DNA of 63,974 nucleotides, filler included, from Ministeria vibrans ATCC 50519 (lineage: Eukaryota; Protista; Filasterea): NCBI GenBank assembly GCA_943704425.1. It is 7 parts of 7 records of this genome, joined end to end, with 100 filler letters (N's around TTAATTAATTAA, not from the genome) between each part and the next. Parts side by side here need not be neighbours in the genome. Positions count along the whole stretch, not along the records: positions 1 to 30,229 come from CALSCP010000833.1; 6 more parts are not named here. One strand, written 5' to 3'. The stretch's first letter is position 1. The number at the start of each line of letters is the position of its first letter. The notes under the pieces are model-generated. The model ran no database searches. It was not told where the DNA came from and saw nothing but the letters and a program-made list of their open reading frames with translations. Below are positions 1 through 26,876 of the stretch, one piece after another. The position numbers and the translations under genes were made by a program.

Positions 1-109
<109 letters not shown>

Positions 110-113
110 TGAC

Positions 114-2345: not shown

Positions 2346-2348
2346 CCT

Positions 2349-2359
2349 GTTTTTTTTTT
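2349..2359 (+). terminator. RNA polymerase III oligo-T terminator
   Basis: T-run immediately 3' of the tRNA. Confidence 0.8.
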
Positions 2360-2835
2360 GTCTTTTTTGATATTTTTTTTTTCTTTCTTTTTTTTTGCTG
2401 TTCTTTTTTTTGCTTTTCCTTACTAATAATTTTTGTTTCTGAACCAATCAAAAATCACGCAGTATTTTTTCATGATTCATGTCATCGGTTATGATAATTG
2501 TAAATTAACAGTTTAATGTTTTATGATTTATGTTGACTGTTGAGAGTTGAGACCGCAATAAATGCATGTGCATACCGCATAATGCATCGAATACAATGAT
2601 GCATAACACATTCGGTAAACCGGCCCGGAGAGTTCTGTCGCTTAACTGTTAAGTGTAAGTGTGTGTGTGACAGGTTTGAGGCTACTTGTTAGATGTATCA
2701 TGTAACTGTGTAAGGTGAAAGGTGGTGTTCGTCGCATTCGACGGACAAGCATACTGACGAATTTGTCGAAATAGAAACAGCTATTATTTTTTTTTCGACG
2801 GAACATTTAGTCACAACAATAATTTTGAATATTTC

Positions 2836-4013
2836 ATGAAAAAATCAACGATTACCCTCCTCTCCCTGGCCCTCGTCTCAAGCGTCTTATCCTCCGTCCC
2901 GTACACTAATCCCGTGATAAATGTCAACTCACCGGACCCCGGAGTTCTTCAGTGGAACTCCCGATTCTATCTCGTCTCCACCACTGGTGACGCTCCCGAC
3001 GCCTTCCCGATCTTTGTCAGTGACAACCTTGTCGACTGGAAGCAAGTGGGCCATTGTTTTCCTGACTGGAAATCCATCGCGGCGCTCTCTTGGGCAAAAG
3101 GTAGCGGAGCCATTTTGTGCACACTTTCGGAACTCATTTCGTCGTCCTTTCAACGAAAAGGCGACTTCTGGGCTCCCGAATTACATTTAAATGCCCGCAA
3201 CGAGACCGTCCTCTACTTTACGGCGCGCTCCCAGGAGGGCATCCTTTCCATTTCGACGGCTCGTTCGTCGTCGCCAGCAGGTCCCTTCACACCCGCCCCA
3301 TCCCCGCTTGTCGCGTCGTCTCCGCTCGGCCAGATCGACGCCACCGTACACTACGACAGTGCCACCGATACACGCGCTCTGATCTGGAAGATTGATGGCA
3401 ACTCTGCTGGCCAGCGCACACCAATCCTGGCGCGGCGCCTTGACGACACTGGCCAAGCGTTTGCAGGTACGGTAATAATAATAAGAATAAATAGTCTCTA
3501 ACCCTAACCCTAAGCCGTCTGGTATCACTATTCTGCCGTGTTCCTTTAGACAATGTCACCCATACGCTCATGACCAACGACCCGCTGTCGTGGGAGCACG
3601 CCCTTGTTGAGGGACCCTGGGTCGTCAAGCACAACAACACCTTTTTTCTTTTCTATTCCGCCAACGGCTTCGCCTCGCCGCGCTACGCCATAGGTGTTGC
3701 ACGCTCGCTCTCTCTCCTTGGAGACTACTCTAAAAACACCGCGGCCAATCCAATATTACACACGAATTTTTCATCGGTGGATCCGCACTCACTGCAAGGG
3801 CCGGGCCACTGCAGCGTGATCCACGCACCTCCCTACGACGACCATTCGTGGGTCATCATTTATCACGCGTGGCACTACGATCACATTGGTGGTGGCAACC
3901 CGCGCGTAGACGCAGTCGATCCCGTCGTGTGGGGCTCCGACAATTGGCCTTACATTGCACACGGCGGAGTTCCCTCCTTCAAGCCCTCGTCGCTCCCAAT
4001 TCTGCAACTTTGA
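2836..4013 (+). CDS. Secreted glycoside hydrolase family 43 (arabinanase/xylosidase-like)
   Basis: Signal peptide, then NPVI..SPDP, SDNLVDW, FWAPE, QIDAT, VEGPW and GPGHCS motifs. Introns at 3101-3160 and ~3467-3549. Confidence 0.92.
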
Positions 4014-4314
4014 AGCGTGACTATATTCGCATCGATAAAAGACCACAACAGTAATGATAATACTAAAAATAATAATAAAAATCAATAATGAAATTAATTT
4101 ATTATTATAAGTAGCGAAATTAGCAGTTGTCATGATAATAATAATAAAAATTATAATAATTAAATTTTTATTATTATTAGATTTTTGAAAAAATCGATAG
4201 CCATGCATTCAAATGAAAAGTTTAAAAATAATAATAACAATAATAAAAATAATAACTATAAAAATATAATAATACTAATTATATTATTTATTTTTGTAAA
4301 AAAAAAAAAATCAG

Positions 4315-6551
4315 TCAGCCTGTGAGGGGCTCGGCTAACGGATCAAAGCGGGCGTGACGACGGGCGGCCTTACGATGACCAAGTACATAGTAGAGGCCAC
4401 CCGCAATCAGAGCAATCCCACACAAACTGCCCACGACAATGCCGGCAATGACCCCACCTGACGGAGCCGGGTTCTTGTGCGGCGCCAGTTGCTGGTGCAC
4501 TGTAGGAAACGAGATGCTCTCGGAACCGACGCAGTGGTGGCACCAAAATGTATTGTTGGGATCGTAGCGCTGCTTGATGGCGAGCAACGATGGGTAATTA
4601 GAGCCCCAGAGACGCGCTTGCCAGCCCGACATGTTGTAGGCACTCTCGGACATGTAAGAGTTGGGACCAAGTGTGTAGAGATGAGACTCAAGAAAGTCGA
4701 CGGGGCCGCCACCAACCAAGTGGAAAAGCGCAGTGCGGAAAGCAGGCGAAATGGACACGTTAGTTGCGTGGGGCGAGCCCACATTGCCTGTAATGTCCTG
4801 ATACAGTTGATAGCTCCATTCCCACTTATTCGCATAGCCAATGTCCAACATGTCAGACAGCACCGAAGCAAGAGTGCCATTGGCACTCATCTCGCGCGAA
4901 ACGAGCGTCGACGGGACACCACCAGCGCTCTGGGGCGTGGGTGGCAGCCAGGGTACGGGTGTGATGGGCTCGAGACCGTACACCACTGCCGCATCCCACC
5001 AAGTGTCGTAGGCAGCGGTCCAGTGCAGCGATGGAATGCCTGTTGTAATGTTGCCCCAGGCGAGAAGAAAGGCTGCATCGGTGGGTGGACCCTGATAAAA
5101 ATACTGCACAAAAATGGACCAGGAAGCATCACAGTCGTCTGTTGGGGTATTTGACGGCGAGAAAAAGACGAGACCGCTCCAGGCCGAGTCAAGTTCAAGC
5201 GCCCACGCAATGTACCGCTCCATGTAGAGCTGCAGCTGCACACGCCCCTCGCCACAGAACGAGCCGCCCCGCAACAGATTGGCTTTGGTGATTCCACCGG
5301 GCGACGTGACATGGGCACGCACAGTAATGTTCACAATGATGCCCCAGGTGCTGCCCCCACCTCCACGCAGTGCCCAGAAGAGGTCCGGGTGACTCTCGGC
5401 ATTCACTTGAAGAAGGTCGCCCGTGGCGGACACCAGCGACACACCAACAATGTTGTCCACGCCAAGTCCGTGTGAGGGGCCGTTTGGACCATGACCCCCG
5501 CCAATGGACCAGCCAATGGCGCCCACTATACAGGCGTGACAATACAAAGACAGAGTCAATTTAAATGTGATAAAGGTGAATCAATTGAAGTCGTTTCTTG
5601 CTTTTCTTCTACTATTATGACAAAATCATCAGTTCTGCTGAGAAATGTGTCCTCTTCACCAACAATAATAATAATAATGAATATAGAGAGACACACTTTG
5701 ATTACCAGTGATGGCCCAACCGCCCGCCACAAACCGGTTTCGCTTCGATGTGATATTTTGAGCAGTTGAGAATGTTGTGCCTGCGCCGAGTGTGATGGAC
5801 GAGTTGTCAGTTGCCCACTCGTACGACTGCAACAGCGTCGTGCGAATAAAAATTCCTGCATATACCACAACACAAGAGAACCTAAGACGAGTTTCCCAAT
5901 AGAGAACTTAAAAATATATAACCTTGATCGCACGAATGACGGTTCATAAAGTCGTGGCCAGTGCCAGCCACCATGATGCACAGGTTGTGGGCCAAAGCAA
6001 AACGCACGGCGGTTTGAACATGAACGGCAGTCAGTGCGAAAACAACAAACGCCGGCGTCCACCCTTCAATCGGGTTGTTACGCGTCGCCGAGACACACGA
6101 CGCAGGCGTGAAGTAGTTGAGATAGCAAGTGTAATCGACATTTTTCTCGTCCTGGACGTACACTCTATAGGGAAGAGATGGAGAGAGGAAAGGAGAGAGG
6201 AGAGTCAGTGCACAATGACTGGCAGCGTCATATGCACGATCGTAAGTACGGTTGGATGTTGGTGTTGTAGCCATAGAAAGGCTGGTCGTGGACGGAATCG
6301 ACAGGAACGGCGGTGGGGCGGGGTGTGCCGGGGCCTTCCCAAGGAATGGCGCTAAAAAAGCGCGTTGAGCGGCCACCCGAGCCACCGCTGCCTTACCGTG
6401 TCGCCAACGGATCGAGTGCGTTGATGAGAGCAGTCACGTTCTCTGATGTGGGCCAACAAGGGTCGCCGCGAGTGCAGAAAGCACGAGCATTCGACGAAAC
6501 GCACCAACACAACAACAGCGTTATGGTAAACATAAAGATGTGGCCAACCAT
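4315..6551 (-). CDS. FAD-binding berberine-bridge-enzyme-like oxidoreductase with signal peptide and C-terminal TM helix
   Basis: FCTRGDPCWP, GTGHDFMNRHS (FAD-attachment His), GGGHGP, DLFWALRGGGGSTWG and BBE tail WGSNYPSLLAIKQRYDP..FWCHHCVGSE. Multi-exon. Confidence 0.92.
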
Positions 6552-6859
6552 GCCGTCACAATAGATGCGGTCAGTGAGATGTCTCACTTCTCAGTGAGAT
6601 ATCAAAAGCCTGTCAATATAGAAAAGGTTTGTACTTTGTTGACTTATTTAAATTATTCTTCTTCTTCTTACTTATTTAAATAAGAAAATAATTAATAGAG
6701 TCGAGATCTGTACCTATGTCAAAACAAAACTATATACAAAACAAAGAGCACAGAGATCTGTCTGCAGCACAATACAATAAATGTATACTGGAATTTGCGC
6801 TGCGCCGATGCGGTTTATTTATTGGGCGAGAAGAACAGCATCATCACGTCGCTCAGCCA

Positions 6860-7162
6860 CAACTTTTCGGGACGTGCCGATGGCAACACTCGTTTGTGAC
6901 GTCGCCCAAGATTGTCGCTGACATCGCACTCGGTGGCAAGCTGACGTTCAACCTGACGACGGATGTCCTCAGCAACGGCACGTGTCTGTCGCACCCTTTG
7001 GGCGACGAGCTGCCCCGCTACGGCTTCTCCGCTGGCGAAGAGACCTACCAGGCGACGTCGGACAATGTCGAGGTCGTCGTATCCCCACAGCACGCGTCTC
7101 CAGCTGCTCGCGCCGTTTGCCAAGTAGAAAGAACCTGCCCACATCTTGCGATGGCAATGTGA
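6860..7162 (+). pseudogene. Coding-like fragment (possible gene relic, weakly ependymin-related-like)
   Basis: Strong G/C-ending codon bias in frame VTSPKIVADIALGGKLTFNLTTDVLSNGTCLSHPLGDELPRYGF. No convincing start or signal peptide, and no room before the next gene. Confidence 0.3.
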
Positions 7163-7268
7163 CGTTGCTCAAGCTTAAGGATCGGTGGTTGACGAATTCT
7201 AGAACTTCCGCAGAACGAAAGAAAGCAAACTTCAACTCAAAAGTTCCTCAAAAGTCAAAATTATTCGT

Positions 7269-10200
7269 ATGATACAACTCATACTCCTTCTCATTGCCGC
7301 GTCGGCGTCAACGGCTCTTCCGAGAGGTCCCCTTGCAAGACCTGTCCCGGATCTTGGCCTTGCGTCGACTCTGAGCGATTGCAAAGAGCGATTGCTCGTC
7401 AACGAAACATTCGCGTCGCCTGAAGTGACCTCACCCGATTGGGAGCTTGAATTCACCGGATTTGAAGTGACATCCAATGGTGCTCAGGTACGTAGTAAAC
7501 TCGGGCACTGTAACGGCCCCTTTGCGGGCGAGTACCCAAAATAGTTGGAATGTCAACAAAAATAGAAAAAGCATTATCGCTCTCCACGTCTCGTAACCCT
7601 GGATCCCCCTGCAAATTTTGCCTCTCCATTGCTCGTCCTCTTATATTTCACCCGAATCAGTCGCTGTAGTTGCTTCGGACTGTACGCGTGTACGTCTATT
7701 GCGTTTTTGATTTTGTTCGCTTGGAAGTTGGCTTTCTCCCTTTTTTTTTTTTTCATCGTGACGCGTCGAAGGGTTGATTCTGTCACATCACTCAGGGACT
7801 CTCACTGAGTCTCACATGTAACATGCTGCATCTGGTGCCAGTCACAATTCAAGTGGGTACCAGCTGTCCCCCAGGCCGTTTAATTTGAAGTGTTTTTTTT
7901 TCTTATTCTATATTAGTAGCTTTCCCCTTTCGTTCCTACTATCTCCCACCTTTCTAACCTCTCACTCTTCCTCTCTCCGATGTTCGTGCGACAGGTCACG
8001 ACAAAGTCGATGGCTGACACCGATGTGGAGTCGGACTTTGCCTATTTTGACAAAGTCATCCCTCATTATACTCGCTCCAGACTGACACTCCGTACCCCAT
8101 GGCATCACGAAACCCCTCGTGCTGTCCGACTGTCGTTCATGACGCGTGGTTCGGGTGGTTTACTCTCCGTGCAATTCGGCACCGACAACATGGACTCAAA
8201 CGTGTTTGTTGTGGACGCCTCGGTGGGCATGACGTCACTCTCTATCTCACTCAATGTACCCTCGGTATCATCGAGTCTCGTCGCCTCTTGGACTTCGACT
8301 CGGCGCAAACAAGGTGAGCCATTATGGGTTATCTTTTTACCTCAACGGGCAGGGAATTGAAATACGCTTGCGCCACACCTTTTTTTTGTTCGTGTCTTAG
8401 CTCTGGATTTGGAGGATCCAGTCGTCGACTGGGCCCTACACTCCGTGGAGGCCACTGCTCTGTGTGAGCTTGTGGACGAGGCGTCGACACAAGAGGCGTG
8501 TTCGACCGCAACGTGTACCAATGGCGCGACGTGTGCGCCACGCCTTGGCAGTGAGGGCTACACCTGCGTTTGCGCTCCTGGATTCTCTGGCGTCCATTGC
8601 GACGTGTACACGCCACAGAAACTTACTCTCTCGCCCTTGAAACTCAGGGACGTTGAAAACGTAAGAGAAGCAAAATTACTCAATCTCTCTTACCCCATTC
8701 TCTCTTTTAGAGCCTTTGCGCGGGAGGTACTTACTTTGTTTCACGTAAATTGTATACCTCTTACGCCATTAATCTCCCCGTATATCTATAAGGTTACTAT
8801 CAATCTGGCTCGAAATGTGTGGTCTGTCAAGCGGGTTACTTTTGCCCTGGCGGTTATACGGTAACTTCGCTTTACGATAATTCAAAAAAAAAACTTTTCT
8901 ACTTTAAACTTTTTTTGAATTATTAATATTCCTAGACTCGCCAACCGTGCCCCAAAGGTCAGAATATTTCTTCTTTCAATATTAAGTTTTATTATTATAA
9001 TTATTCTGAATTTTGTCTTTTTTTCTTCATCACAGGTTATTTCACAAACGACGGGGAGAAAAACTGCGACTCTACAAACGACAAATGTCCTATGGGATCG
9101 TACTGCGCCGGTGGCGGTCAGGTATTGTTCGTGTGTGCAGTACTTTTGAAGTACTTTTTTCGTACTTTTCATGCTCTGAAGAAGCTCTGAAACGAATGCT
9201 TGCTTGTTTTGTTTCTTTTTGTCAGCCACGTAAACTATGCCCTGCTGGCAAGTACCAGGATGAGGCGGGACAGTGGAATTGCAAAGACTGCTCCCCTGGT
9301 CAGTCTATCCCTATCCCTCCTCGATTTACCAAAATTAGCAGTCCTACCATAACGCTTTTTATATTTTGCCTGTACAACAAACAGGCTATTACACAAACGA
9401 CGGGGAGAAAACCTGCGACTCTACAAACGACCAATGTCCAAAGGGATCGTACTGCGCCGGTGGCGGTCAGGTACTGTTCGTGTGTGCAGTGCTTTATGCT
9501 CTGAAACGAATGCCCTTAATCAATTGTTTTTGATTCTTTTTGTTAGCCACGTAAACTATGCCCTGCTGGCAAGTACCAGGACAAGACGGGACAGCGGAAT
9601 TGCAAAGACTGTGGCGCAGGTGCGACAGAACGATGTTTAACAACAAAATATTACGAAAAATAATTCATTTCTTCTCTACACGACAAGGCTTCACCTCTCT
9701 CCTTGGAGCCCAAGATAAATGTGACCACCACGTGTGTGCTAAAGGACACTACTGTGCTGCTGGCCAAGTAATCCTCCCGTCCTACTAAGCCTCTCTAAAT
9801 TTATTTGTTTTCCTTGTTTCAGCCAGAAGAGAAGTGCCCTCCAGGAAAGCATCAGGATATGCCCGGACGGTCGACATGCAAAGACTGCGATGCAGGTAAA
9901 TTATGGTTCTGGTCACTTCTACTTCTCCTCTTCGTCTTCTACTAATCTTTTAAAACTTGGTAGGCTATTACACAAATTTCGGCGAGGTAACCTGCGATAG
10001 TGACAACGACGAATGCCCTAAAGGATCGTACTGTCCTGGCGGGGGAAAAGTAACAACTGAACATCCTTCCATGTCCATGCAAGAGATTCATGACTGCCCT
10101 GTGCCTTGAATTCTTTTGTAGCCACGCGAATTATGCCCCGCCGGCAAGTACACGGATGAAAAGAAGATGGCAGCATGCAAGAACTGCGATCCAGGCAAGA

Positions 10201-13200
10201 AGATCAACTGAGAGAAACGCAAAAATTAATCTACCTTTTTTTCTCATTTCTTTATAATTATAATTATATATCTCACAGGACATTACTCAGAAGAAGGAGG
10301 AACAACCTGCAGCTCGTGTGAGGCGGGATACTATTGCGAAGGCAACGGAAAGGTTCCCACGCTCTCTCTTGCACCCTTTTGAATACTGACCAAGCGTGGC
10401 TCAAATCCTACAGCCCAGGGAGTCGTGTAAGGCAGGCAAATACCAGGACGAGGAGACGGAGTCGTCATGCAAGAAGTGCGATTCCGGTGAATTCTCCTCC
10501 TTTTCTGGGGCCAAAAAATGTGCCATATGCAAGCCTGGAACGTACACTGGCGCTAACGATGACGGCTTTACCGAATGCCAAACTTGTAGTGCCGGTTATT
10601 TCTCAGGCATTTATTCAGCATCAAGTTGTGAAACATGCCCAGCTGGTCAGATAACAAACCCTCAAAACTCACCGCGCTCACAGCACCCTCTTTAAAAGGC
10701 AAATTCTCACCTCCGGGAGTCCACAAATGCTTTCATTGCCCAGTTGGGCACTATTGTGAAGGCGGAACGGTAAATGGAAAACCGAGAGAGACGAGAGAGC
10801 CTGCGTTCAACATCCAATATAAAATTATAATTATAACACGTGTCCCCACTGCTGATTGTGTGTAGGCCAGTCAACCGTGTGCCCCTGGCAAATTCCAAGA
10901 TCAGCCAAAAAAATCATCGTGCAACGTGTGCGAAGCGGGCACCTACTCTAAGGAACTAAAGAGCACCAAGTGTACCCTTTGTCCCACATGTACGACGCAC
11001 TATTTTGATTCTTTCTGCCATTTCACAATGCTGACAATAATGATAATAATTGTTCTTGAATTTCTTTTATAGTCGAGTATCAGCCTTTTCAGGGATCGAC
11101 AGTGAGCAGGAAATGAAAGTGTATATCTGGAGGGAAACTAACACACCTCTTTCGTTATTATTATAATTGTAAAAAGGATTGTCTCAAGTGTCACCGGACA
11201 CTCACGTCGGTTCCAGCCCAAGACCGCCGAACATGCATATGCACGGACGGCACTGCTAGCTCTACGGGCTGCCACCCTTTGAACGTCACTTTTGAGTGTA
11301 CCACCGCCGTCAACAATGACGCCAACCGTGTGAGAGGCGTCATCGCTCATCTCGAAGCGTCCGAGAGCGGCAAATGGAAGGTGACACCAAAGGTTCCGGG
11401 CATTCATCAAGAGGGCACTTCCGACAGTGATGGAGACACCTTGAACATTGGTGGCGCTGCAGCGCTCACTCGCGGTATCATTTCGGGTGCTGTCTACCCC
11501 GGTGAACAATTTGGCGTCCGCTTTAAATCTTCCACCTACGTAAGCACACAAAAAATTTCAAAGACTATAACATAACTTTGTTCTTTTCCTTTTTGCAGAT
11601 TTTGTTGACCATGCCGTGCGGTTGCAACACCGAGTCGCGTGTGTGCGACAGCGCCTACCCCGGCTTTCAAAAGCACTTGACTCCCGACGAGAGTACGCTT
11701 TTCTCTCTCTGACCTCTCCGATGATATCTAAATAATAATTTATTGTGTGTTCTTATTATTTTTCAGTTGAAGATGGCCCCCTAAACTTTGTGGTCCGCCA
11801 GAAAGGCGGAAAAATCTTCTTCTCATGGAGCGTCAATTCAAAATGTGCAATCAACTACGAGATCACACGTCAAGAGTCCCAAACGGGACCTAAACTGTTT
11901 TTCTCGAATGTACTCGAGGTGCCTCAAAGCTCATGCGAAGCTCCAATTGAACCGGCGGATGTCTACGACGACTTGGTTGCCAGTCAGCTCGAGCTGGGCA
12001 CGTCCTACAACTATTGCGTTCGGGGTGGCAACTTACCCAAGGACTATCGCTCCAAGGAGAGGTACACTCTTTTGACAGCCTCACTCTTAATAATATTAAT
12101 AATAATTATTATTATTAATGTTATTGATTATAATATGATTGACTTCACCTTAGCTGTCAGAAGTGGAAGGTTCACTTTGACTCCAAGATTGCCATTTCCG
12201 TGGTGACATTGCGGGGCGAGCGACCCGTCGAAAACGTTACGGTCGCATGGGAGATCAAGACTGCGATTTGCAGTGGGACGACAGCCAAGGGACAAGCGAA
12301 CGAGCTTACGGATGAGGTGGGCCGTACCTTCTTCCATGTCAACGAGCCTTGCCTCCTCAGCTTTAAGTACGTCGTGTCAATTACTGTCAGCAAGAACACG
12401 CACGGCATCGACCACATCTTCAAGTGCAAGGATGGACGGTTCTGTAACACTCGTCTGATTGAGATGGAGCACCTCAACTTTGGCCACACTCTCACATTCT
12501 ACGATTCAACAACTGCGCTTGTGCAAGGCAAGGTGCAGATTCCTCTGAGCGTTGGTACCTCCGAAGCAGATATTGTTCCCGAGACGCGTCGTGACGCGAC
12601 GGACAAGGTGTACGATGCGGATGCGCCCTGGCCGTCAACGCTGGGCGAGACGGCTGCACACGTGTTCCACGCGATGCCGCACGTCGAGACGTTTGTGCAG
12701 AACCGCGACGCGAGAGCTCAGTCGCTGGCGAAGCGTGAGGCTAAGGTGGTGGTGGAGGAAAAGGAGGAGGCACGCCGCAGCAAGGTGGCGGTTCCGGCGC
12801 ATGCGGACACGGCGTTTGTCGGTGACCTCTTTGTGACGAGTGACGCGGTAAATCAGGCTGCGTGTGAGCTGGAGTGTGACACGATTGTCAACTGCTACGG
12901 ATGGACGTACCTGGTCACAGCCGTGGTTGCTGGCTACCGCTGTCGTCTGCAGGTAGGCGACGAGTACAAGTCGGTGTTTTCGGAGGGATCGCACTCAGGC
13001 TGCTCGACTGCTCGCTCGCCAACAGCGTGTGCACAAAAGGGATGCCTTCCTGGCTGGACTGGTATGCAGTGTACGACGCGCATGATGCATGCCAACACGT
13101 CGTACTCGGGGAGCACCACGACGACTGTGGTGGCTGCGAATGCCGAGGCGTGTGCCACGCACTGTGACAGCACGACGGGATGCACTGCTTGGAGCTACCC

Positions 13201-16200
13201 TGTCAAAGAAGCGTGTCTGGTGCAGAGCGACGATGTGTGGACACACTCGGGCGGAATCATCTACAAGGAATGTGTGCAGAGTGGCTGTTCGCGCACATTT
13301 GCCAAGGACAAGAGCCACGCAGCGTTTTGTGGTCTGAAGGCGGCGTGCCCGCCGGGCTTCACGAACTCTCCGAGCTGCACAACACCACACACGTTGCTGA
13401 AGACGTCGTACACGCCGGGCACGGATGCGGATCTGCGTGCGCCGGCCGCGTCCGCCGCGGCATGCTCCGCCCTGTGCGTGAAGGCGGGAAGTGAGTGCAC
13501 GGCGTGGTCGTACTGCCCGTCGTGCTTTCCCAAGGCCTACCCGTGCGCGTTGTTTTCGACGACATCGTGGCAGGGAAGCGCGGAGCGCACGTCGGATGCC
13601 GAGTCGGGCTGTTCGGCGGCGTCATGGGAGAGCAATCCCGTCCAATGTCAACAGTGTGCGCCTGGCTATGGGGGCGACCGCTGCAATGTCAAGGTGTACC
13701 ACGAGAATGCGGAGCCGAGCCGCTTGACTTCTGCGCTACTGTCGTCGACGGCAACGACGCACTCGGTGTCATGGAAGACGTGCGAGGCCAAGTGCAACTC
13801 GCTGGGACGCTCGTGTGTGGCGTGGTCGTACCGTGCGAGCACCTGTTACACGATTGCAACAGTGACGGCGGCCGCAACGACGGTGCCTTTTTGGCAGCGC
13901 AACGGCGTGATCTCAGGTTGCAGCGCGTTTGGCTATCAGCTCTATGGCGAGGCGATGTGCGTGAAGGAGCCGTCAAAGATCACGACGCACGCCGACTCAG
14001 TTGCACTGGAGGCGTCGACTCTCGTCACGGGCATGGCCAACTCGCAGCAGTGTGGAGAGAAGTGTGACTTTGACGAGCTATGCAAGGCATGGACGTTTGA
14101 CGTGAAGCAGTCCAAGTGCTACCTTCAACAAAAGGACACGGCACCGGCATTCCAGCGACTGACAACGCTCACGTCGTATGCGGGCTCGCGCTTGGGAACA
14201 ACCGAGCACACCACGAAAGTGTCACACAGCGTGTCGTCGGTGTCAGCGAACTCTGCGTTTGGCAGCGTTCTCAGCCTGAACGGCGAGGTGCACCACATCA
14301 ACAGCAATTCCTACTACAAAAGATCTCTCAACGGCGAGGCAACGGCGGTGTTTTCGGATCCTCGCTACGACTACAGCGTTGCAGTGTTTGAGGATGGAGG
14401 ATTCCAGTCGTGGGGCTCGCTCACGTCAAACGTGCCGGGATCGAACGCGACACACATTTTGGGAGTGTTTCTCGGCAAGGAGTACTACGTTGTGCTCATC
14501 GACACAACTGGCGTGAACCAAGTGCTCGTCATCAAGAAGGCAGGCCACTCGTTTACGCAGCATTTGACACCCTTCTCTGATGTGGTGCATGTGACGACAA
14601 CGGACGAGTCGTTTGCGGCCCTAACGTCGTCTGGAGGGTCGTACATCTGGAACATGGATGGGACGAACGAGTGTTCGAGTTTACCCTGCCAGAACGGCGG
14701 CTCGTGTGCCGTCTCGGCGACGCCCAACACGTTTGAGTGTTCGTGTCCGACGGGTTTCACTGGGAACTTGTGTGAGGACGACATTGACGAGTGCCTCAGG
14801 GCACCTTGTGTGAATGGTGGAGCGTGCACAAACAGCCACGGCGCGTACGAATGCGAGTGTATCGCAGGCTACAAGGGGGTCCACTGCGAAATTGACATCA
14901 ACGAGTGTGCGTCGAATCCGTGCTGGAACGACGGTACGTGTAGCGACCACGTGAACCAGTTTACATGCAAGTGTGCCCCGGGCTGGATGGGCGATCGGTG
15001 TGGCGCCGATGTGAATGAGTGCGCGCCGAAACCCTGCCAGAACGGCGCGACGTGCGTCAATGGTCGTGACAAGTTTACGTGCCACTGCATGCCTGGATAC
15101 ACAGGCGTGACGTGTGCATCAGAGTTGCGTGAATGTTCATCGAATCCGTGCAAGAATGGGGCGACGTGCAACGACCTGGTGAACAAATACTCGTGCCACT
15201 GCGCTCACGGGTTCTCGGGCACGCACTGTGAAGAGTACATTGAGTGCGTGTCATCACCGTGCCAGAACGGTGGCACGTGTGCCGACTTGGTGGGCAGCTT
15301 TGTGTGCACGTGTCGTCCAGGGTTCGCTGGCGCAATGTGCCAGACAAACATCAACGAGTGTGCAAGCGACCCTTGTCAGGCGGGTGGAACATGCGTGGAC
15401 CGCGAAAACGGCTACGTGTGCAACTGCCTGGCGGGCTACGCGGACAGTCGGTGCCAGACGAACATCAACGAATGTGTGTCGTTCCCATGCTACAATGGTG
15501 GGACATGCGAGGACGGAATCAACAAGTTTACATGCCGCTGTGTGGCTGGATACGCGGGCTCGCGATGCCAGACGAACATCAATGAGTGCTCGCCCAACCC
15601 GTGTGCTTCAACGGGCACCTGTGTTGACCAACTCAATGGCTACTACTGCTCGTGCAAGACGGGATACAACGGGCCGACGTGCGCAGCAAACATCAACGAC
15701 TGTGCCACCAACCCGTGTCACAATGGTGGAACATGTAATGATGGTATTGCGTCGTTCACATGCACCTGCCTTCCCAACTACGTGGGATCGACGTGCGCAT
15801 CATTCACTGGAGCATCTCGCCGTCGTCGCTCGGTCTCAGCCTCGCTTCGACGACGCCGTCGCAATATGCTTTGGGGACGCCGTGATGCGGAGCGAGTCGT
15901 GACCAATTTGGCCATCCCCTCTCAGGGTGAGTACTCACGAGATGTTGGAGTTGCGGCTGCCCACAGCCGCAACCGACGCGGAATTCTGTTCCCTCGCGAA
16001 GACGACATTCCTCGCTCCGGGTACCGCAAGATTGTTGCCACTTCGGGTGCCTTCTGTGCTCTGCACCTCTCAGGACGGGTTGTGGCGTATGGTGCTTCCA
16101 GCGTGGGTGGCGAGATTCCGTCTGGACTCAAGGGATTCTTGAGCGAGCGGATTGTTGATGTGGTGGCGACGCGGAGTGCGTTTGCCGCACTGCGCGACGA

Positions 16201-19200
16201 TGGACGTGTGTTTGTGTGGGGTGACGCGACAAAGGGTGGCGAGGTGCCGGCGACGAAGAAGAGCTCACTGTTGGTGGGTATTGTCTCGCTCCACGCGTCC
16301 AAGAGCGCGTTTGCAGCCCTGAATGAGAACGGGGGTGTTGTGGCGTGGGGCGATCCTGATGTGGGAGGTGACATGGCGACGCTAGAGTTGAAGCTGACGA
16401 AGGGAGTGGAACTGATTCATGCGCACCCACTTGGGTTTGCGGCAGTATGTGAGGACAGCATTACACGCGTGTGGGGTTCAAACGGGTTGACAGCGATTGC
16501 ATCTGGTGAGCTCACAAAGTTTGTGGCGACCAGCACCGCGTTTTACGGAGCCATGTCGGACGGAGCGTTGTGGAGCAGTGACTCGTCCGTTGTAGCACAG
16601 TCGGGAGTTGTGGACATTGTGGCGTTTGCAAGCGGTGTGGTGACGATGACGAAGACGAAGGCGTGCTACTACCCAGCGGGTGCAGGTGTGTACGAGGCAG
16701 GCGAGTGCTTGACATCGCCTCACGTGTCGGCGTGCAGCCAGCGTGTTAGTGGACTGGGATGCACGCAGAAACCGTGTGGATTTGGCACGGGAGGAGTCAG
16801 CTGTGAACTCTCCCTGTTACGACCAGGTTACGCCTGGAACCTTGACAGTGCTGTTGAAGTAAAGGGTGTAGACTCGGCCGAGTCGTGCTCGAGTCGGTGT
16901 GACAAGAGCAGCACGTGCATGGGTTGGACCTTTCTCCAGGACCTGGGAAGTGGACTGGAGGAGAGTTGTCTGCATTACGCGACAGCGGACGCCGACAAGT
17001 GGACAGCGGCGGGCAAGAATGCTGCAGTGAAGTTGATCTTACATGAAGGTGTTCATTCGGCGTGCAGTCGACGTTGGCTGCAAGAGCAGTATCTATCATT
17101 GTCCTTTGAGGCGTACACGGTGCGCAAGACGTGGTGCGAGCAGGGACGGACGGACCAAGTTGTGCATAAGATTGCGCGAGGCACGATCAAGGCGCCCGGC
17201 AAGATGTTCTATGATGCATTGACGCTGACTGCTGATGTTTGTGAACTCCTGTGCGAGATTATGGATGTGTGTTCGGCATGGACACATCGGTCGACGATTT
17301 GTTCGCTGTTTGCAGACACGTCGTTTGGATCGGGCTCGAGTGACAAGGTGATGTTTGATGATGGGATTGGTGGACATGCCATGTCAGGCATTGTGGCGAG
17401 CGTCAGTGCGCCAGCAAGTGCAGGCTCGGGTGTCAAGGCGGAATGTCCGCCGGGTCGCACGGGGGTGATGTGTTCTCAGTCGTATGTTCATCGCAACACG
17501 GTGTATCAGTACAATGAGGCGGGTGTGCTGGAGAACTACGGTGGCATGTCGATGATGGGATGTGCGGACAAGTGTGATACGACCACTGACTGCAGCTGGT
17601 GGACGTATATGCCAAGTGCGACCACGTGCAACCTGTGGCAAACCGTTGACTCGGCAGTGTTCAAGGTGGAATACAACGAGGAGTACATCTCGTCGTGCAG
17701 CCGTGAGTACGTGCACGGAACGGACAAGACGCTGCGGCAGTGCTGGCGCGAACCACCAACGTTCCTGGAGACTCCCGAGTCGCCGAGCCGTTGTGCCGTC
17801 TCTAATGCAGAGGTGTGTGCCTACGACTGGTATACGGGTGCCAAGGTTCAATGCGAGACGACAGGGCCGGACGGAAGTTACAACATGCAGGTCCCGATTG
17901 GTCTCACAGTTCAATTTTCCGCAACGTATGGTCTACACGACCTCATGTTCAACCCTACTGAAGTGTCGCCGAAGGACGTGGTTGACCACGGAAACTCACC
18001 CTTGTGCAAAAACAAACCGACGACCAAGTCACCTTTTGTGGTGATGCCTGACGGGGACCTTCAGGGTGTGAATTTTGTTGACAAGACGACTGCAGAGCTT
18101 ACCATTACGGTGGCGGGTGGACCTCCGCAGTGCAACATTCTGCTGGGTGCATCTGAGATCCTTCTGGAGAGTCCTCTCATATGTGACAACGGCAACACCT
18201 TGACCGTGGTACAGGATACGGTGGTGCACACACATGTGCTGCCTGCGACACTGTTTCATGTCACCTTGAGCAAGGTGTACGAAAGACCCGAAGTGGCGCC
18301 CTATCTGGAGCGCATCCAGACGCGCAAGTACTTTAGCATGGATTTACGTCACGATGATGAATCGAAAGAGGAAAATGTCGACCCAGGAAATATGGCAAAC
18401 GACAAACTACGCAAGCTCACGTCGCATCAACAGAAGCAGTGTGACAACGACGTACCGGCCGACAACTTGAGTCTGGAATCCAAGGCGGATAAGGCGCAAA
18501 TAAAAGAGGCCTTGGGGGAGGCTCAGAAGGCAAATCACGAGCGAATGATTCGCTATGAGTTCCACACGAGACCCCAGCTGACGGTAACCCTTGAAAATCA
18601 GTTGAGTGGCGATAAAAAGATAAAAGACAAGACGGCAAAAGACGTATGCGCTGCCAAGGGTCGCACGTTCCCAACGATTCTTGGCACCGGCGTGAATAAG
18701 AGCCCAAACACGGCCACTTTTTCGATCCATGCCACCGAGGTGTATGGCGACAAGGAGGAAGAAAAGTGCCCCTTCGTGGAGGGTGCCGTTCACATTGTGA
18801 ACACTGTTGCGACGACCACGTCGGTGACGGCCAAGAAACACGATAAGTCCGGCACGGGAGTGCCCGTCAGTGACGATGACAAACCCGACCCAGCCAAGGG
18901 TTCTGTTCCGGTGCATTTGTGTGGTCGCTACCCGGGCTGTGTGGCTTGGCTTTCCATCGCTAAGAGAGTCGGGAACGAAAAATTACCCTCTGACGAAATG
19001 CCTCCTATGATTGAGGTCGGGGGTATCACTGCGAGTCCGGAACGAAATGCAGCGGTCATGTCAGCTGAGACGCCACACACGCGCCCTTTCTATGCGACGC
19101 TGAATGTACCAGGCTGGGAGACGCTGGACGGCGTGAATCACGTCGAGTTGGACGTCGCCATTGTTGGGCAGGTCGAACTGAGCGCCTTTTTCTCGCTACA

Positions 19201-22200
19201 ACTCCCGGAGTATTTGCCTTTGATGATTGTACGTGATCCGCCTGGAGGAGGTAGCTCAGCGAGTGTGAGCGCCGGCAAGACAGTTGCGTGGTCGTGGACT
19301 AACTCACTCAGTTTTGGTGCCGGTTTGGGCGTCCAGGCGCAGCTTGCAGCCGCTACCAAGAACGACTTGACGTTCTGTACGGGAGTTGGAGGGATGGTGT
19401 GCAAGAATGGATTCAGCGCGAAGACTCTTGCGTCGCTGGGTCGCCGCGATCTGGAGAGTCTTGGAATGAAGCTGGCAATGGTTTCGATGCAGGAAGCGTC
19501 GGACGCGCAGGCAGACGCCGATGGAAAGCCTAACGCCCTCCAAGGCGGTTCCCTCGGGTTTGCGATTGATTCAACAGCAGGTGTGCCTTCGACAAATTGG
19601 GAGAAATCACGCGAGATCTCCATGTCGTACTCGGTGTTGACAAGTGGCAACCCAGGGACAGCGGGTCGCTCGTCAGACATGTACCTGGTGCCGTCCCTCT
19701 CGGTGAAACTCACGCGCTCACTCAACATCAAGTTCAACCGTGACGAATGTTCAATGGAGGCTGAGCCAGTGGTGATTGTTTCTCCCGACGGTGACCAGGT
19801 GATGGCGTGGAAGAGCGAGGATGATCTGCGCTATCGTCAGGTGCCGGATTTGCTAAGTCAGCTGAAGTACGAGATCGAGAACACGGGCACAAGTGAGACG
19901 ATCAAGCGTCTTGTGAATGCCATCAACGGCTGGATCAATATGCTTGCGTACAATGGAGCGGTACATCACATTGTGGGTCAAAAGGGTGGAAGGTGGACGG
20001 ACTTTGAGGACGAGCTGAAGATGGATGCTGCGTCGTTTGTCCCATCAACGGCTGAGAACGCTGTTGCTATCCACGAGCTGTTCGATGACATCAATTCGAT
20101 CATCTCGTACAAAGAAGCGGCGGGGGCCTATGTAAAGATGATGAAGAAGTGGAAAGACAAGAACGAACGTCTGTACGGCTCATCGAAGTATGCATTGCCA
20201 CCCATCAATTCACTCAAGTTGCAAAGTGGCGTGAAACAGTTCAAAGGTGAAATAGCCGAGCCGTACGAGAAGAACGGGGCGTTGGTGCCGGACAAGTGGG
20301 CAGACCGTGCTGGCGACGAGCCGCAGAAGTGGACGGACGAGGCGACTATCGAGTGGCGTCGAAGGGCACGCCTTGCGGATGCGAAAGCGGCCGATATGAA
20401 CACATTCAATGGCATTAGCTTCTCCGGTGGCGGCGCGTCCATGTCATACGGCGTTGGAGGCGGAAAATCAGAGAGTAGTCACGCTTCATTTGGGTTTGAT
20501 CATACATTGACCCTGCCCTCGCTCAAATTTGGGTTCAAGTTCAATTTGGGCGTCGGTCTAGAGCTTGGGCTGGAGATTCCCTCTTCGATCAAGCTTGCAT
20601 GGAGCTTTTCACAGGATGCGTCGACCAGCAGCTCGGAGGAGGTGTCGTTTACCCTTGGTGATCCCGATGTCGGTGATCAGTTTGACGTGTTGGTAAGCTC
20701 GAGACTCATAAAATGGAGAGGAAAAAATTGAAAATTTATGTGTTTGTTCTTGTAGATATTCTATGATCCACTCTTCTCCACGCCAGTGTTCCACACACTC
20801 AGCGGACGTTCAATGTGCATTCACGAAGAGAACACAGTGCGTCGAGAGAGTGTGCGTATGATTCTGGCCAAGTGGCCCACTGGTCCTGTTCTGCCCGATG
20901 AGCCGGCGGTGTTTGAGTTGCTCTTGACCAATGACTCACCGACGGGCGACGTCTCCGATTTCCTCCTGAAAATGCCTCCGAGCTATAATCGACTGGACTT
21001 GGTGCCTATTATCGACGGTGACACCCTCAAGGCGCCCTTGAGTTTCAAGAACTTCGCCGTGGGCAGCACCCGCATGACTCTTGAGATATGGCGTGCGGCC
21101 GGGACGTACAAGTATCCGCCTTTCCGCCTGAAATGGGTATCCGACTGCGAAAGTGGGTTCGCGGCAAACCGTGTCCTTCAACACGGCTACGACACAACTG
21201 GCACGTACCTTGACATTCCCGTGAACTTCCTTGAGCCATGTCCGCCCGTCGAGTTTGCGGGTGATCTCTTCACGTACGGTTCGTTTACGATCAACGACGA
21301 GACGCGCTCCAAGGGTGACTTTGCTGGCAAACACAAGGACCAATTACGAGTGGTGGCGGTGAATAAACGAGTTGTGGAGCAGCCTTGGACGACGGGCGAG
21401 ACGGAACGTCTGGTGAGTGTGGACTTTGAGTACCGAAAGGCGGGCACGACGGCGTGGAACCTCGCCAGTATGGTGATGGTGGAGGAGGCGGAAGAGTTCC
21501 CTGCCGAGGGTGGTCTTGCCTCTTTGGCGTCGGTTTTTGGCTATGCGACTGCCTACTGGGACGTGTCGACGCTGCCTGACGGAAACTACGAGGTGCGTCT
21601 ACACAGCGTCTGCAAGGCGGCGAGTATGACGGACCCACCCGAGACGATCAACGAGCAGTTCTCCAAGGTGGTGTCGGGTGTCGTGGATCGTCAAGCGCCG
21701 CGTGTGTTTGGCCACTTTGCACAGCCTGCATCGGGTGTGTACTCGCCCGGTTCGGCGGTGAGCATCACCTTTGACGAGGAGCTGGACTGCCGAGAACCTT
21801 ACGGGTTTAAAGTGAAGGCTACGGCGACAATCAACAACTCAGAGTTTACGTGGACGTCCTCCAATCAATTGCTTGAAGTGTGCTCGGGACGCACCATCTC
21901 GGTGGAGTTCGCACTGTCTGTGCCATGGGACAATATTGAAGGAGCGACGGTGGAAATGACGGTCTCGGATGTCGAGGATAAGGCAGGCAATGTGATTGAG
22001 AAGGGTCGACGGTGGGAGTTTGTGATGACGGGAGTGACACTGGCCGGTGTGAAGGCAACGGTGACGGAGGTTGGTGTGCAGCGTCGATTGGTGCGTGCGG
22101 TAGGCGAGACACAGGAGCATGCGGAGCAGCGATGTGCGTCTGCAATTACAAGCGAGCTGACTGAGTTGCTGAAGATTGATGTGGGACGTGTGCATGTGAG

Positions 22201-22687
22201 TGTGGTTGGCGTCAACGCCGAGACGGGCTACCCGTCCATTTCGGTGTCGATCGATGCGGCTACAAATGCGCATGAGGTGAGCACTGCTGCACTGCTGACG
22301 CGTCTGTACAACGGCGCGTTTGCTGCGAATAATGACACCGACTCGGCTGTGTCGCAGATGGAGTGGCTGTCGCAAGTGAACACGGCTGTACCTGTGCGCC
22401 TTCAGATGTCACATGTAACCGCAGGAGCTGGTGCAGTAGCGGGTGGTAGTGCTTCGTCGCTGGGTGATCACACTCTGCTCATTATTGGTTTTATGATTGC
22501 CGCTGTGTGTCTGGTCATCCTTGTGGTGCGTCGTCAGGGAGGCAAGCAGCGCGAGGTTAACTATATGCTAATTCAAGAGACGCACTCGCTCAAGGAAGAC
22601 AACCGCACACTTATGCAGCAGAATGAGCGTATGATAGCCATGTTGGCGGGTGATCAGACAAACAAAACGCAGCACCTTCAGGTTTAA
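7269..22687 (+). CDS. Giant type I membrane protein: signal peptide, EGF, GCC2/GCC3 Cys-rich repeats, FN3, 8 PAN/Apple-like units, split RCC1-like repeats, 10 EGF-Ca repeats, RDPPG-motif region, Ig-like domain, TM, short tail
   Basis: Signal MIQLILLLIAASASTA, then many short exons (7269-12061) splicing in frame with CPxGKYQD..C repeats. One 8.5-kb exon (12154-20692), an intron (20693-20755) and a last exon (20756-22687) with TM LLIIGFMIAAVCLVILVV. Confidence 0.88.
9036..9620 (+). repeat. Recent tandem duplication of an exon-intron-exon unit (GCC2/GCC3 repeat)
   Basis: 9036-9300 and 9385-9620 are nearly identical, including intron sequence (gtattgttcgtgtgtgcagt vs gtactgttcgtgtgtgcagt; gctctgaaacgaatgc in both). 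Confidence 0.9.
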
Positions 22688-22817
<130 letters not shown>

Positions 22818-23092
22818 AGGGAACGCACCTTGCTGCGCTCGTGTCGGCGCCAAGGTCAATGACCGTGTCAGCCATGGTTCAAAAGAGTGACAAAAGCAGT
22901 TAACAAAGGGAACTGTGACTCGACTCACTCGTATTTAAGTGTGAAAAAGAATGATAATTAATTAATAATAATAATTATTATTATTATTATTATTGATAAT
23001 AATAATTATTTAATACATTGTACATCAAGCGCTCAAGGGCGCGTTTGGGAATTAAGATGTAGGGCAGTGCAATTGTGAGTGAGTTTGGCCTT

Positions 23093-24427: not shown

Positions 24428-26876
24428 TTACACTTGGGCCTCGGGAAGACCCAATGTCGATACAAGATTGGGCTGCGATTGCGGTCGACGCGAATGGCTC
24501 GCGTCGGACAAAGGGTAGTACGGAGGCGGAATAGCACGTTCGTGGGACGGGCCTGCATGGAGGTGTGCGTGCGAGTGAGCAAACGCAGACCCTCCTGCCG
24601 CGGCGGCCACCGCTGTCTGAGCGTGCAGGGGAGAGGTTGCAGGGCCATTATGCAGTGAATAGTGCAACTCATGCTCGTTATTGGCCGCCTCTGCCGTGTG
24701 GCTGACCACGTGCGTGACTGCGCCGCCCGCACCCCCACCACCATATGCAGCGGCAGCCACAGCCGCCTCAGCTGCCAATTGCAACGACCGACTGTTGGGT
24801 ATTCCGCCAAAGCTGCTACCGGCACTGCCGGTGCCCCCATTGGCAGTAGACAGCCCTGCAGCGGCGGCAGCTCGACGGTGGACATACTCGGGGGTATCGG
24901 GGATGCCCCAACGAGTTGTGTCTTCCAGCATGAGCACGTCGAGCGTGTACTCAAAAATGCGCGACTCAGGAAACTCCACCTTGGTCTGCTTCTTCTCTGT
25001 TGCATAGAACATGGACGTGCAGCAGATCTCGGCAACACACCGGCCCGCCGCGTAAAAGTACCATGTGCAAATGTCGCGAGGACAGTTGTTGTCCTTGACA
25101 AACAGAATGCTAAGAAGTAGAGGAAGCAAGGAACAGGGGAAAGAGAAAAGAAAAGGAAAAATAATAATAAGAGAAAGAGATAGAGAGAGGAGGAGAGGTA
25201 AGAGAAGAAACACAGTGATAGGGAGAGAAAGGGGGGAGAAAGAAACAAAGAAAGAGAAAAGCAAAGTGAAACACGGTGATAGGAGAAAGGAGGAGAAAGA
25301 AACATATAGAGAAAAACAAATTAGTGATAGATGATAGGGAGAGAAAAGGAGAAAGAAACAAATAAAGAGAAAAACAAAGTGAAACACAGTGATAGGAGAA
25401 AGGAGAAGAAAGAAACATATAAAGAGAAAAACAAAGTGATAGATGATAGGGAGAGAAAAGGAGAAATAAACAAAATGTTAAAGAAGGAGAACAGCACAGA
25501 AAGAAAGCGGAATAAAGACAACCATCAAAGTCTAGTTAGTACCGCTTGTTAAACTTGAGAGAAAGTTTGTCAAAGAGCTCAATGTTCTTCAAGAAGTTGT
25601 CACTGGCATTGGGAGTGTAGCTGAACATGTTGTTCTGGCGGTTGTAGTTGAAACGGATGACGGGAGTGGGTGACGTGTTGATGAGATGTCGCTCTTCTAA
25701 CTCAGAAGTAATGATCGGGATTTGACATCGAGGTGTCGACATTTGCATCTACAAACAAACAACATTGTAAAATGCGACCTCAGTGCCATGACAAATGTCC
25801 CGTCGCCGAACCTCCTGTTCGCGTAGAATAAGCTCCATAAGACCATCTAAAACATAGAATTTGGCTTCGGACAGCAAACAGAGACGGTCTGTGGGCGACG
25901 GAGGCAACGGCACCGATGCGCCGTCACGGAAGAAATTCAAAATGTACCCAAACAACCTAAAAGTAAAAGGAGAAGGTGGTGAGTGGAAAAGAATAGGACG
26001 GAGAAAGAAACAGAAAGAGATATAGTGTATACAAAGTGATAGAGAGAGAGAGAGAGGGAGAAAGGAGGGAGAAAGAAATAAAGTGATAGAGAGAGAGAAA
26101 CAAAGTGAGAAGGGAGAAACAGTGAGAGGAAGGAGAAGAGAAAACAAAGTGATAGAGAGGAGAAAAAAAAACAAAGTGATAGAAAGAAGAGAGAAAGAGA
26201 GAGAGGACGGACAAAGAAACAAATGGGAGAGATGACTCTCGACCGAGCGAGAAGTGAAAACTTTAAAACAGTGTTTAGAAATGAAACACAAGGGCTCAGC
26301 AGATGGAATTGTTGTAACATAGTTGCACAGACTCATAGCATATTGTGATCTTGCAAGAATACGCCCACTCCCTTTCGAGCCATCTTCCGCTCACACATCA
26401 CAAACACAACTGAGCTATTACACACCCCCAGTGTCGGCGGCAACCTCCCTCCGTGGCAGCGGGGCAAAGGAGATCCAGTCGCTTCGCCCGAACACAAGAC
26501 AAACACGCCTGCCTCTCCCGATACCGTACCTTCCGTCCCGGTCGATAGTAACCCAGCCTTCTGGATCCTTCTCCACCTCCATGCGTCCCGAGAACATCGC
26601 TGACAGCATGTTGTCTCCCTGCGAGTTCACACAAAAACGGACGAGACAAACCCAAAAATAAGAAATGTCACACTCGACGCCATTGTCAACGTGGCACGCA
26701 CGAAACATCATCACAGCCTCGGTTCGTACTTGCTTCATGAGCGTGTCGACAGCGGTGTAATAGAGAAAGCCGCCGACGTTGAGTTTGACATATTTCTCCT
26801 TCTTGCGCATCGCGCGCGACGATGAGGGCGAGTCCATCGACGACGATAGCGTTCGTTGCGCAGTTGGAGAGGACAT
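24428..26876 (-). CDS. KCTD10: BTB/POZ CUL3 adaptor of the BACURD family (KCTD10/KCTD13/TNFAIP1)
   Basis: [36 protein letters not shown] and [27 protein letters not shown]. Multi-exon, with an Ala/Gly/His-rich C-terminal extension. Confidence 0.95.

Follow-up and report, generated by a model that had tools for sequence, protein, structure and literature searches.

Teneurins are giant surface proteins in which EGF repeats are joined to a module shared with bacteria; they are type II membrane proteins with a YD/RHS shell and a toxin-like tip. Saprospirales and other FCB-group bacteria encode giant proteins with LamG domains and a sorting domain of the type IX secretion system (T9SS), which remain uncharacterised and carry NCBI names such as 'LamG-like jellyroll fold domain-containing protein' or 'T9SS type A sorting domain-containing protein'. 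The Bacteroidota surface adhesins SprB and GhpA are also very large T9SS cargo, and GhpA catches prey in Aureispira (bioRxiv 10.1101/2024.01.29.577165). In the choanoflagellate Salpingoeca rosetta, a group of 'DPT/Ca2+ EGF' genes has been listed as candidates for horizontal gene transfer by sequence-based tests (Matriano et al., bioRxiv 10.1101/2020.06.28.176636). Here we describe a gene of the marine protist Ministeria vibrans ATCC 50519 (assembly GCA_943704425.1), located at positions 7269-22687 of the window, that is, of the whole 63,974-nucleotide stretch of DNA that was analysed. It encodes a type I membrane protein of 4,428 residues with a core that is shared with the bacterial LamG giants and with the S. 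rosetta proteins.

An earlier inspection of the DNA without database searches (the sequence-only reading) had proposed a giant chimeric surface protein, with eukaryotic adhesion modules grafted onto a bacterial-type scaffold, and had suggested a role in prey capture, adhesion or attack. Its observation is confirmed. Its interpretation is supported in part: it is right on the chimeric architecture and on the bacterial-type relatives, and it goes beyond the evidence on the direction of grafting and on the function. The analogy that it drew with teneurins holds as a likeness of outcome. The Pfam model EGF_TEN matches the EGF array of the M. vibrans protein with 82.5 bits; however, the topology is type I, as it has an N-terminal signal peptide and a C-terminal transmembrane (TM) helix, and no Pfam match to YD, RHS, NHL or Tox-GHH was found in the protein, the shared module being unrelated to that of teneurins. 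Since the fusion spans four eukaryotic supergroups, the parallel is one of outcome and not of shared history. With teneurins as the first, the family is a second, independent case in which adhesion modules of eukaryotes are joined to a module that bacteria also possess. GhpA was rejected as a relative, having a different architecture (SprB and GhpA are built from dozens of Ig-like repeats) and no sequence match; a family member from Aureispira likewise gave no match to PDB chain sequences in a bank that includes GhpA fragments.

A single transcribed gene with eukaryotic outer modules

The contig that bears the gene (C833) belongs to a 29.7-Mb eukaryotic assembly of 2,860 contigs. Two long open frames lie on its + strand, one of 8.5 kb (12200-20731) and one at 20786-22687 that is closed by the stop codon, and upstream of them are many short open frames with cysteine-rich translations. 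RNA evidence was taken from contigs of four public runs (three studies) over 7200-13100, at least one of the runs being a poly(A) library. These contigs contain at least 15 joints, each skipping 53-104 bases. When the ambiguity of the joints was allowed for and they were refined to canonical splice sites, 15 of the 16 junctions checked were GT..AG, the sole exception being a GC..AG intron at 10195-10278. A contig of 1,942 nt runs from at least a cysteine-rich exon at 10412-10644 through 11177-11539 and 11767-12059 into the giant exon (12152-12433), so that the 5′ exons are on the same transcript as the giant exon, as the sequence-only reading had required. A second contig splices 7992-8311 to 8399-8660 and then passes through a microexon of 16 nt (8711-8726); the microexons of 22 nt (8936-8957) and 29 nt (11073-11101) are also backed by RNA contigs. 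Together the overlapping spliced contigs span 7992-12899. Exon 1 is covered by RNA contigs over 7200-7593 in X11/X12, and the 10-base loose end CAATGGTGCT of the poly(A) run X20 equals 7475-7484 and ties exon 1 to 7995.

The remaining junctions were placed by GT..AG sites and by the regular pattern of 73/86-nt exons. The resulting model has 24 exons, each of them open when the reading frame is followed from the ATG at 7269, and a coding sequence of 13,287 nt; its product is slightly longer than the ~4,300 residues originally claimed for one giant gene. The region is a single expressed gene for a type I membrane protein. All coordinates are collected in the table below.

Domain searches were run exon by exon, on the separate exons rather than on the spliced protein. 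From the N-terminus the order is a signal peptide, one EGF domain, about eight GCC2/GCC3 units, a PAN array, ten EGF domains, RCC1-like repeats, a second PAN array, the core, a TM helix and a cytoplasmic tail. The GCC2/GCC3 units, whose Pfam model PF07699 now carries the name Ephrin_rec_like, are encoded by 73-nt exons alternating with exons of 74-86 nt, plus the 22- and 29-nt microexons. The EGF, PAN, RCC1-like and GCC2/GCC3 domains previously named are all recovered by Pfam, and the signal peptide is apparent to the eye as a hydrophobic N-terminus in the translation of exon 1. The RCC1-like region also gave WD40_RLD at 38.6 bits, far under the cut-off of 150 for that model. The FN3 label given to exon 11767-12061 is unconfirmed, as this exon has no Pfam match at E<=0.1. 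The two polybasic runs that follow the EGF array are possible kexin/furin-type processing sites, at which the protein might be cleaved.

A core shared by bacteria and protists

No Pfam or NCBIfam model covers ~18500-22135, in agreement with the expectation that the region lies outside the characterised eukaryotic families. The core takes up the third of the protein that is nearest to the membrane. All of the scaffold motifs noticed previously are present at the expected places. In the first half of the core, which we call the RDPPG domain, an invariant R-D-P-P-G is accompanied by a pair of amphipathic Gly/Ser-rich hairpins, a helical insert, FSGGG and the acidic, DxDxxD-like motif LGDPDxGDxFDV. 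The second half forms three Ig-like sandwiches in the predicted fold. For the last of these the Big_5 match is below the cut-off in M. vibrans (18.9 versus 23.6 bits); the aligned bacterial domain scores 25-34 bits, above it, so the Ig-like domain, sub-threshold when taken from this protein by itself, becomes convincing through its bacterial homologues. Within the last exon eukaryotic homologues align to about residue 594 and bacterial ones end at about residue 460. An 18-residue helix and a tail of 52 residues then close the protein, in line with the TM segment and the ~50-residue tail of the sequence-only reading, whose coiled coil in the tail is putative; the tail is conserved with the closest paralogue only.

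The genome contains at least eight paralogues of the core region, so this is a multigene family. Their outer modules in the giant exon vary: PAN, EGF and RCC1-like on contig C2288, PAN and RCC1-like on C2457, and PAN with fibrinogen-C-type domains and no EGF array on C905 (L130:183-9389, - strand). The last of these is a case of module swapping inside the family within one genome. When a profile of five paralogues was searched exhaustively against 1.84 billion representative proteins, 292 matches were found at E<=1e-3, falling in three blocks with their order kept, and all of the named members were eukaryotic. They comprise choanoflagellates (S. rosetta, S. infusionum, Barroeca monosierra, Monosiga brevicollis and Choanoeca flexa), Amoebozoa (Soliformovum and Difflugia), the rhizarian Paulinella micropora and the diatom Seminavis robusta; a further member is on a TARA contig with eukaryotic neighbour genes. 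S. rosetta has at least 11 copies (PTSG_07019 and at least ten paralogues). The closest unicellular relatives of animals carry a dozen copies. No viral relatives were found in IMG/VR with the RDPPGG pattern.

Across the eukaryotic members the N-terminal modules include dermatopontin, MAR sialic-acid-binding, Sushi, fn3, EGF_CA, Ephrin_rec_like and fibrinogen domains. Of the complete sequences inspected, the majority finish with a single TM helix followed by a short tail that is not conserved. The conserved blocks follow a fixed order, P-x-Y/H-x-P-L-x-V/I-L-R-D-P-P-G-G/D-x-S, then S-x-T-S...A-G...S-D-x-F-L-V-P, then F-S-G-G-G and finally L-G-D-x-D-x-G-D-x-F-x-V. All of these blocks are present in the M. 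vibrans protein and align with eukaryotic and bacterial members, and it also has the three Ig-like domains after the RDPPG domain and the C-terminal surface-targeting element of the family. The S. rosetta dermatopontin/Ca-EGF proteins share the core, the TM helix with its tail and the multigene character, with ~25% identity to the M. vibrans protein in the first half of the core; they differ in carrying dermatopontin and a single EGF_CA in place of PAN, EGF arrays, RCC1-like and GCC2/GCC3 modules. The claim of an undescribed family needs qualification. The S. rosetta members were already known as transfer candidates; they were interpreted through their dermatopontin domain, and the shared core was not described there (bioRxiv 10.1101/2020.06.28.176636). 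The family can be defined as a Pfam model, and it explains the 'alien' scores of these S. rosetta genes.

Bacteria were scanned with one genome per species, seeded with the RDPPG block (focused alignment A3). An earlier bacterial scan seeded from the paralogue alignment A1, whose patterns are lineage-specific, gave no match, and no stretch of the diverse alignment A2 was suitable. The scan with A3 gave 94 confirmed loci. Most are in Saprospiraceae, Lewinellaceae, Haliscomenobacteraceae (including the isolate Phaeodactylibacter xiamenensis KD52) and other Bacteroidota, and the remainder in Calditrichota, Fidelibacterota, Chlorobiota, Latescibacterota and Eisenbacteria. The A1 paralogue profile matched 79 bacterial open reading frames (1,100-4,165 aa), in which its blocks A, B and C keep their order, and hence the likeness extends beyond the seeded motif. 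In a plain phmmer comparison the last-exon protein scored up to 106.7 bits against bacterial open reading frames over its first ~460 residues, and the corresponding region of a homologue from S. rosetta found bacterial matches down to E 1.8e-28 in a database of 5.8 billion proteins. Judged from these alignments, homology of the core between bacteria and protists is solid. The bacterial genes are flanked by ordinary genes (MarR, LuxR, Rrf2, aldehyde dehydrogenase), in one case on a complete 4.7-Mb chromosome, and these surroundings are genuinely bacterial. Among evenly sampled Bacteroidota the core is carried by 11 of 301 species. P. xiamenensis has six copies (2,270-4,159 aa) on contigs C10, C18, C79, C82 and C90; the two copies on C82 are ~10 kb apart.

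The bacterial proteins are built from one or two LamG domains, CarboxypepD_reg, the core, Big_5 and the T9SS sorting domain Por_Secre_tail. Homologues with LamG, CarboxypepD_reg, Big_5 and a T9SS tail measure 1,600-4,200 aa and are mostly from Saprospirales. The large secreted Bacteroidota LamG/T9SS proteins that the sequence-only reading pointed to are thus real relatives, by profile, phmmer and domain layout alike. They share with the M. vibrans protein a core of ~750 aa in the same order (beta-sandwich, RDPPG domain and three Ig-like domains, the last Big_5-like), placed beside a C-terminal surface element with ligand-binding modules N-terminal to it. Where the M. vibrans protein has the sandwich directly before the core, the bacterial homologues have a CarboxypepD_reg-like domain. 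The M. vibrans protein differs from them in its TM helix and cytoplasmic tail, its introns, its eukaryotic-type EGF, PAN and GCC2/GCC3 modules and the long helical inserts in its RDPPG domain. Neither large exon has a Pfam match to Laminin_G or Por_Secre_tail, and NCBIfam gave nothing, so in the strict sense this is not a bacterial T9SS LamG protein. What the two groups have in common is a module of ~750-1,200 residues, without a database model, that occurs both in T9SS cargo of the Bacteroidota group and in giant type I families of choanoflagellates, amoebozoans, a rhizarian, a diatom and the present marine protist.

The giant core gene of many Saprospirales loci is immediately preceded, on the same strand, by a gene for a tail-fibre-like protein of 300-540 aa with a shared N-terminal domain (L016:4013-4915, L019:1698-2915 and 37 other bacterial loci, alignment A5). 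Peptidase_S74, an endosialidase/intramolecular chaperone domain, was found in 11 of these 39 proteins and a phage tail collar domain in three. This neighbour, which fits a surface-fibre or adhesion apparatus, may be a partner of the giant protein. A homologue in the M. vibrans genome was not found with the one query used.

The history of the core was examined with a maximum-likelihood tree of its best-conserved part (121 rows, IQ-TREE quick search, LG+G4, unrooted). A branch with SH-aLRT 100 separates all 57 bacterial rows, and with them three unnamed proteins (a T9SS tail is present in the one that was checked), from every named eukaryote and from all of the copies of this genome. Given this single split, one transfer between the domains suffices. 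As the tree is unrooted it does not identify the donor; thus the statement that eukaryotic modules were grafted onto a bacterial-type scaffold stands for the sharing of the core and not for its direction. The expected bacterial relatives exist, but an origin specific to holozoans, as for teneurins, does not fit members in four eukaryotic supergroups.

The reverse direction, in which the scaffold is eukaryotic and was acquired once by FCB-group bacteria, is possible though somewhat unlikely. The bacteria form one clan, the eukaryotic sequences are more diverse and fall in several deep groups drawn from four supergroups, and the core is rare among Bacteroidota. On the other hand, domains typical of bacteria (CarboxypepD_reg-like and Big_5-like) travel with the core, and among eukaryotes the core is scattered in a way that departs from the species tree, as expected after transfers; both speak for a bacterial origin. 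Moreover, a single motif pattern served to seed the bacterial sample, which therefore understates bacterial diversity, and the missing root bears on this direction as on the other.

Possible functions of the protein

Our preferred reading, to which we give a probability of roughly 0.6, is that the protein belongs to a family of modular cell-surface adhesion or recognition receptors with the core as a constant stalk or assembly platform. It is based on an arrangement that is constant across bacteria and eukaryotes, namely a core beside a C-terminal anchor with interchangeable outer modules. The core sits next to its anchor, which is the TM helix in eukaryotes and the T9SS sorting domain in bacteria. 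The variable N-terminal part is supplied by PAN, EGF, GCC2/GCC3 and RCC1-like modules in M. vibrans, by LamG in bacteria and by dermatopontin, MAR, Sushi or fibrinogen in other eukaryotic members. These shuffled outer modules would bind other cells, prey or matrix.

Several points weigh against this reading. Five of the 23 introns in the gene model are inferred (7487>7995, 9298>9385, 9470>9547, 10769>10866 and 20692>20756), and a contig of ~240 nt at 9229-9470, found in three runs, reads unspliced through one of them (9299-9384). This contig could be due to intron retention, to carry-over of DNA into the library or to an assembly break at the repeated exons; the frame and the repeat pattern require the intron. 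The RDPPG domain has no recognised fold and the stalk role is therefore a default, and the invariant R-D-P-P-G, the conserved cysteine pairs and the DxDxxD-like motif suggest a more specific role than that of a spacer. S. rosetta, with its genetics, and the cultivable P. xiamenensis are tractable systems for the function of the core.

A mainly structural role in a cell coat, theca or extracellular matrix, rather than as a receptor, is unlikely. Such a role would suit the very large size and the tandem EGF, PAN and dermatopontin-type matrix modules, and the cytoplasmic tails are unconserved between paralogues, which argues against conserved signalling. Expression of the S. rosetta members has also been linked to thecate cells and a role in theca production suggested (bioRxiv 10.1101/2020.06.28.176636). 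However, the eukaryotic members consistently keep a TM anchor and tail, and the family occurs in organisms as differently covered as naked amoebae, a testate amoeba, a diatom and choanoflagellates.

It has also to be considered whether the RDPPG domain is a beta-pore-forming membrane-attack module, the adhesion arrays binding prey and the two amphipathic hairpins inserting in the manner of perforin-2 (MPEG1). Two AlphaFold2 models were made, with the RDPPG domain modelled within a larger piece rather than folded alone, and it had no convincing structural neighbour. Foldseek matched the model of the M. vibrans protein, which is poor in this region, to pore-form MACPF proteins at E ~1e-4 but with a TM-score of 0.1 and a root-mean-square deviation of >20 Å, the match being confined to the pore-form hairpins. 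The nearest named atlas clusters for the eukaryotic and the bacterial domain were aerolysin, ETX-MTX2 and monalysin at 0.77-0.80, under the 0.9 line. Two poorly modelled loops are strongly amphipathic, the first being closed by conserved cysteines; their pLDDT is <50, and alternating patterns are also normal for ordinary beta-sandwiches. These hints, all below the reliability lines of the tools, and the type I anchor are the extent of the likeness to perforin-2, MACPF and aerolysin, to which no sequence or profile similarity was found. With the RDPPG domain as query Pfam gave nothing meaningful at E<=10, the MACPF and aerolysin models being absent even there. Membership of MACPF or of ETX/aerolysin is unsupported by hhalign, with probabilities of 0.8% for a Bacteroidota MACPF alignment and 0.9% for one ETX_MTX2 sequence. 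PDB sequence searches with both core halves, the Aureispira homologue and the A2 profile gave nothing significant, the profile search reaching only a natterin-like protein at E 0.94. A perforin-2-like pore is thus distinctly unlikely. The wider proposal that RDPPG is a new pore-forming or membrane-inserting module common to predatory or alga-associated Bacteroidota and phagotrophic protists is improbable; if it were true, the family would be a surface-anchored capture-and-kill device that grips its target with the outer lectin and adhesion arrays and punctures it with the core.

In the GDPH motif of mucin VWD domains, self-cleavage takes place at the Asp-Pro bond. By this analogy the core could be a self-processing or force-sensing module like GAIN or SEA, the outer array being freed or exposed when the chain is cut at the invariant Asp-Pro within RDPPG or at the polybasic runs. 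The near invariance of R-D-P-P-G across bacteria and eukaryotes and the polybasic runs would be in keeping with this, but Pfam finds no GAIN, SEA or VWD homology and the second Asp-Pro (LGDPD) is missing from the bacterial consensus, so we consider it highly improbable. Finally, the view that the gene model is an artefact and that the region holds two or more genes is very improbable: although five junctions are inferred and the longest evidence consists of partial contigs, none spanning the whole gene, the spliced contigs overlap, the frame is continuous from ATG to stop, and paralogues and homologues share the overall layout.

Feature coordinates and surroundings

Table. Features of the M. 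vibrans gene and its neighbours, in window coordinates.
Feature	Position	Strand	Evidence or remark
Glycoside hydrolase family 43 fragment	2836-3498	+	neighbour
FAD/BBE-type oxidoreductase	4315-5556	-	neighbour
Whole coding region	7269-22687	+	24 exons, 4,428 aa product
Exons 1-6	7269-7487, 7995-8313, 8401-8660, 8711-8726, 8793-8860, 8936-8957	+	
Exons 7-12	9036-9121, 9226-9298, 9385-9470, 9547-9619, 9688-9767, 9823-9895	+	
Exons 13-18	9964-10049, 10122-10194, 10279-10352, 10414-10645, 10699-10769, 10866-10989	+	
Exons 19-24	11073-11101, 11177-11539, 11599-11692, 11767-12061, 12154-20692, 20756-22687	+	
Exon 1, start codon and signal-peptide-like hydrophobic N-terminus	7269-7487	+	translation, judged by eye
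Exon with single EGF	8401-8660	+	Pfam EGF 27.2 bits; RNA joint to 7992-8311
GCC2/GCC3 cysteine-rich repeats (Ephrin_rec_like / TNFR-like)	8793-11101	+	PF07699 42.9 bits; RNA joints; translations
Exon labelled FN3 by the sequence-only reading	11767-12061	+	spliced to giant exon; label unconfirmed
Giant exon, 8,539 nt	12154-20692	+	open frame; acceptor RNA-supported (12059>12152 joint), donor 20692/GT predicted
First PAN/apple array	12815-14137	+	Pfam PAN_4 73.4 bits, PAN_1 49.6 bits
Ten tandem EGF domains	14666-15796	+	Pfam EGF 186.9 bits, hEGF, EGF_CA; cysteine-pattern count
Two polybasic runs, RRRR and RRRRR	15818-15862	+	between EGF array and RCC1-like repeats; direct reading
RCC1-like repeats	16013-16627	+	Pfam RCC1_2 26.7 bits (cut-off 22)
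Second PAN/apple array	16826-17650	+	sequence pattern and Pfam PAN matches
Ig-like beta-sandwich directly N-terminal of core	18557-19168	+	
RDPPG beta-rich domain, first core half	19220-20692	+	motif conservation, eukaryotes and bacteria
Motif LMIVRDPPGGGSSAS	19220-19264		
Motif FTLGDPDVGDQFDV	20648-20689		
Last intron, 63 nt, GT..AG, interrupting conserved core	20693-20755	+	placed from frame and family continuity, outside RNA contig range
Second core half, three Ig/FN3-like sandwiches, last Big_5-like	20756-22135	+	part best conserved with bacteria
Motif VFHTLSGRSMCIHE	20786-20827		
Motif GNYEVRLHSVC	21581-21613		
Motif VDRQAPRVFG	21683-21712		
Motif FDEELDC	21770-21790		
Juxtamembrane segment, eukaryotic members only	22136-22474	+	alignment ends
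Single TM helix	22475-22528	+	18-residue hydrophobic run, then RR
Cytoplasmic tail, 52 residues, ending HLQV, then stop	22529-22687	+	translation
FkbM-type methyltransferase	27976-28455	-	neighbour
C-terminal part of Tyr/Ser-Thr kinase domain	29297-29707	-	neighbour; PF07714, 48 bits

Long simple repeats of the CT/GA dinucleotide type lie downstream of the gene in intergenic DNA (22700-22930 and 25100-26300). No light-harvesting complex genes were found in this genome, and the organism is therefore taken to be a heterotroph. Its HSP70 (L111:1501-3318) has a 100% identical counterpart only in an unnamed metagenome protein from ENA; the best named matches, mostly animal HSC70, reach about 70-74% identity. 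Its DNA is also present in metagenomes from algal cultures and seawater.

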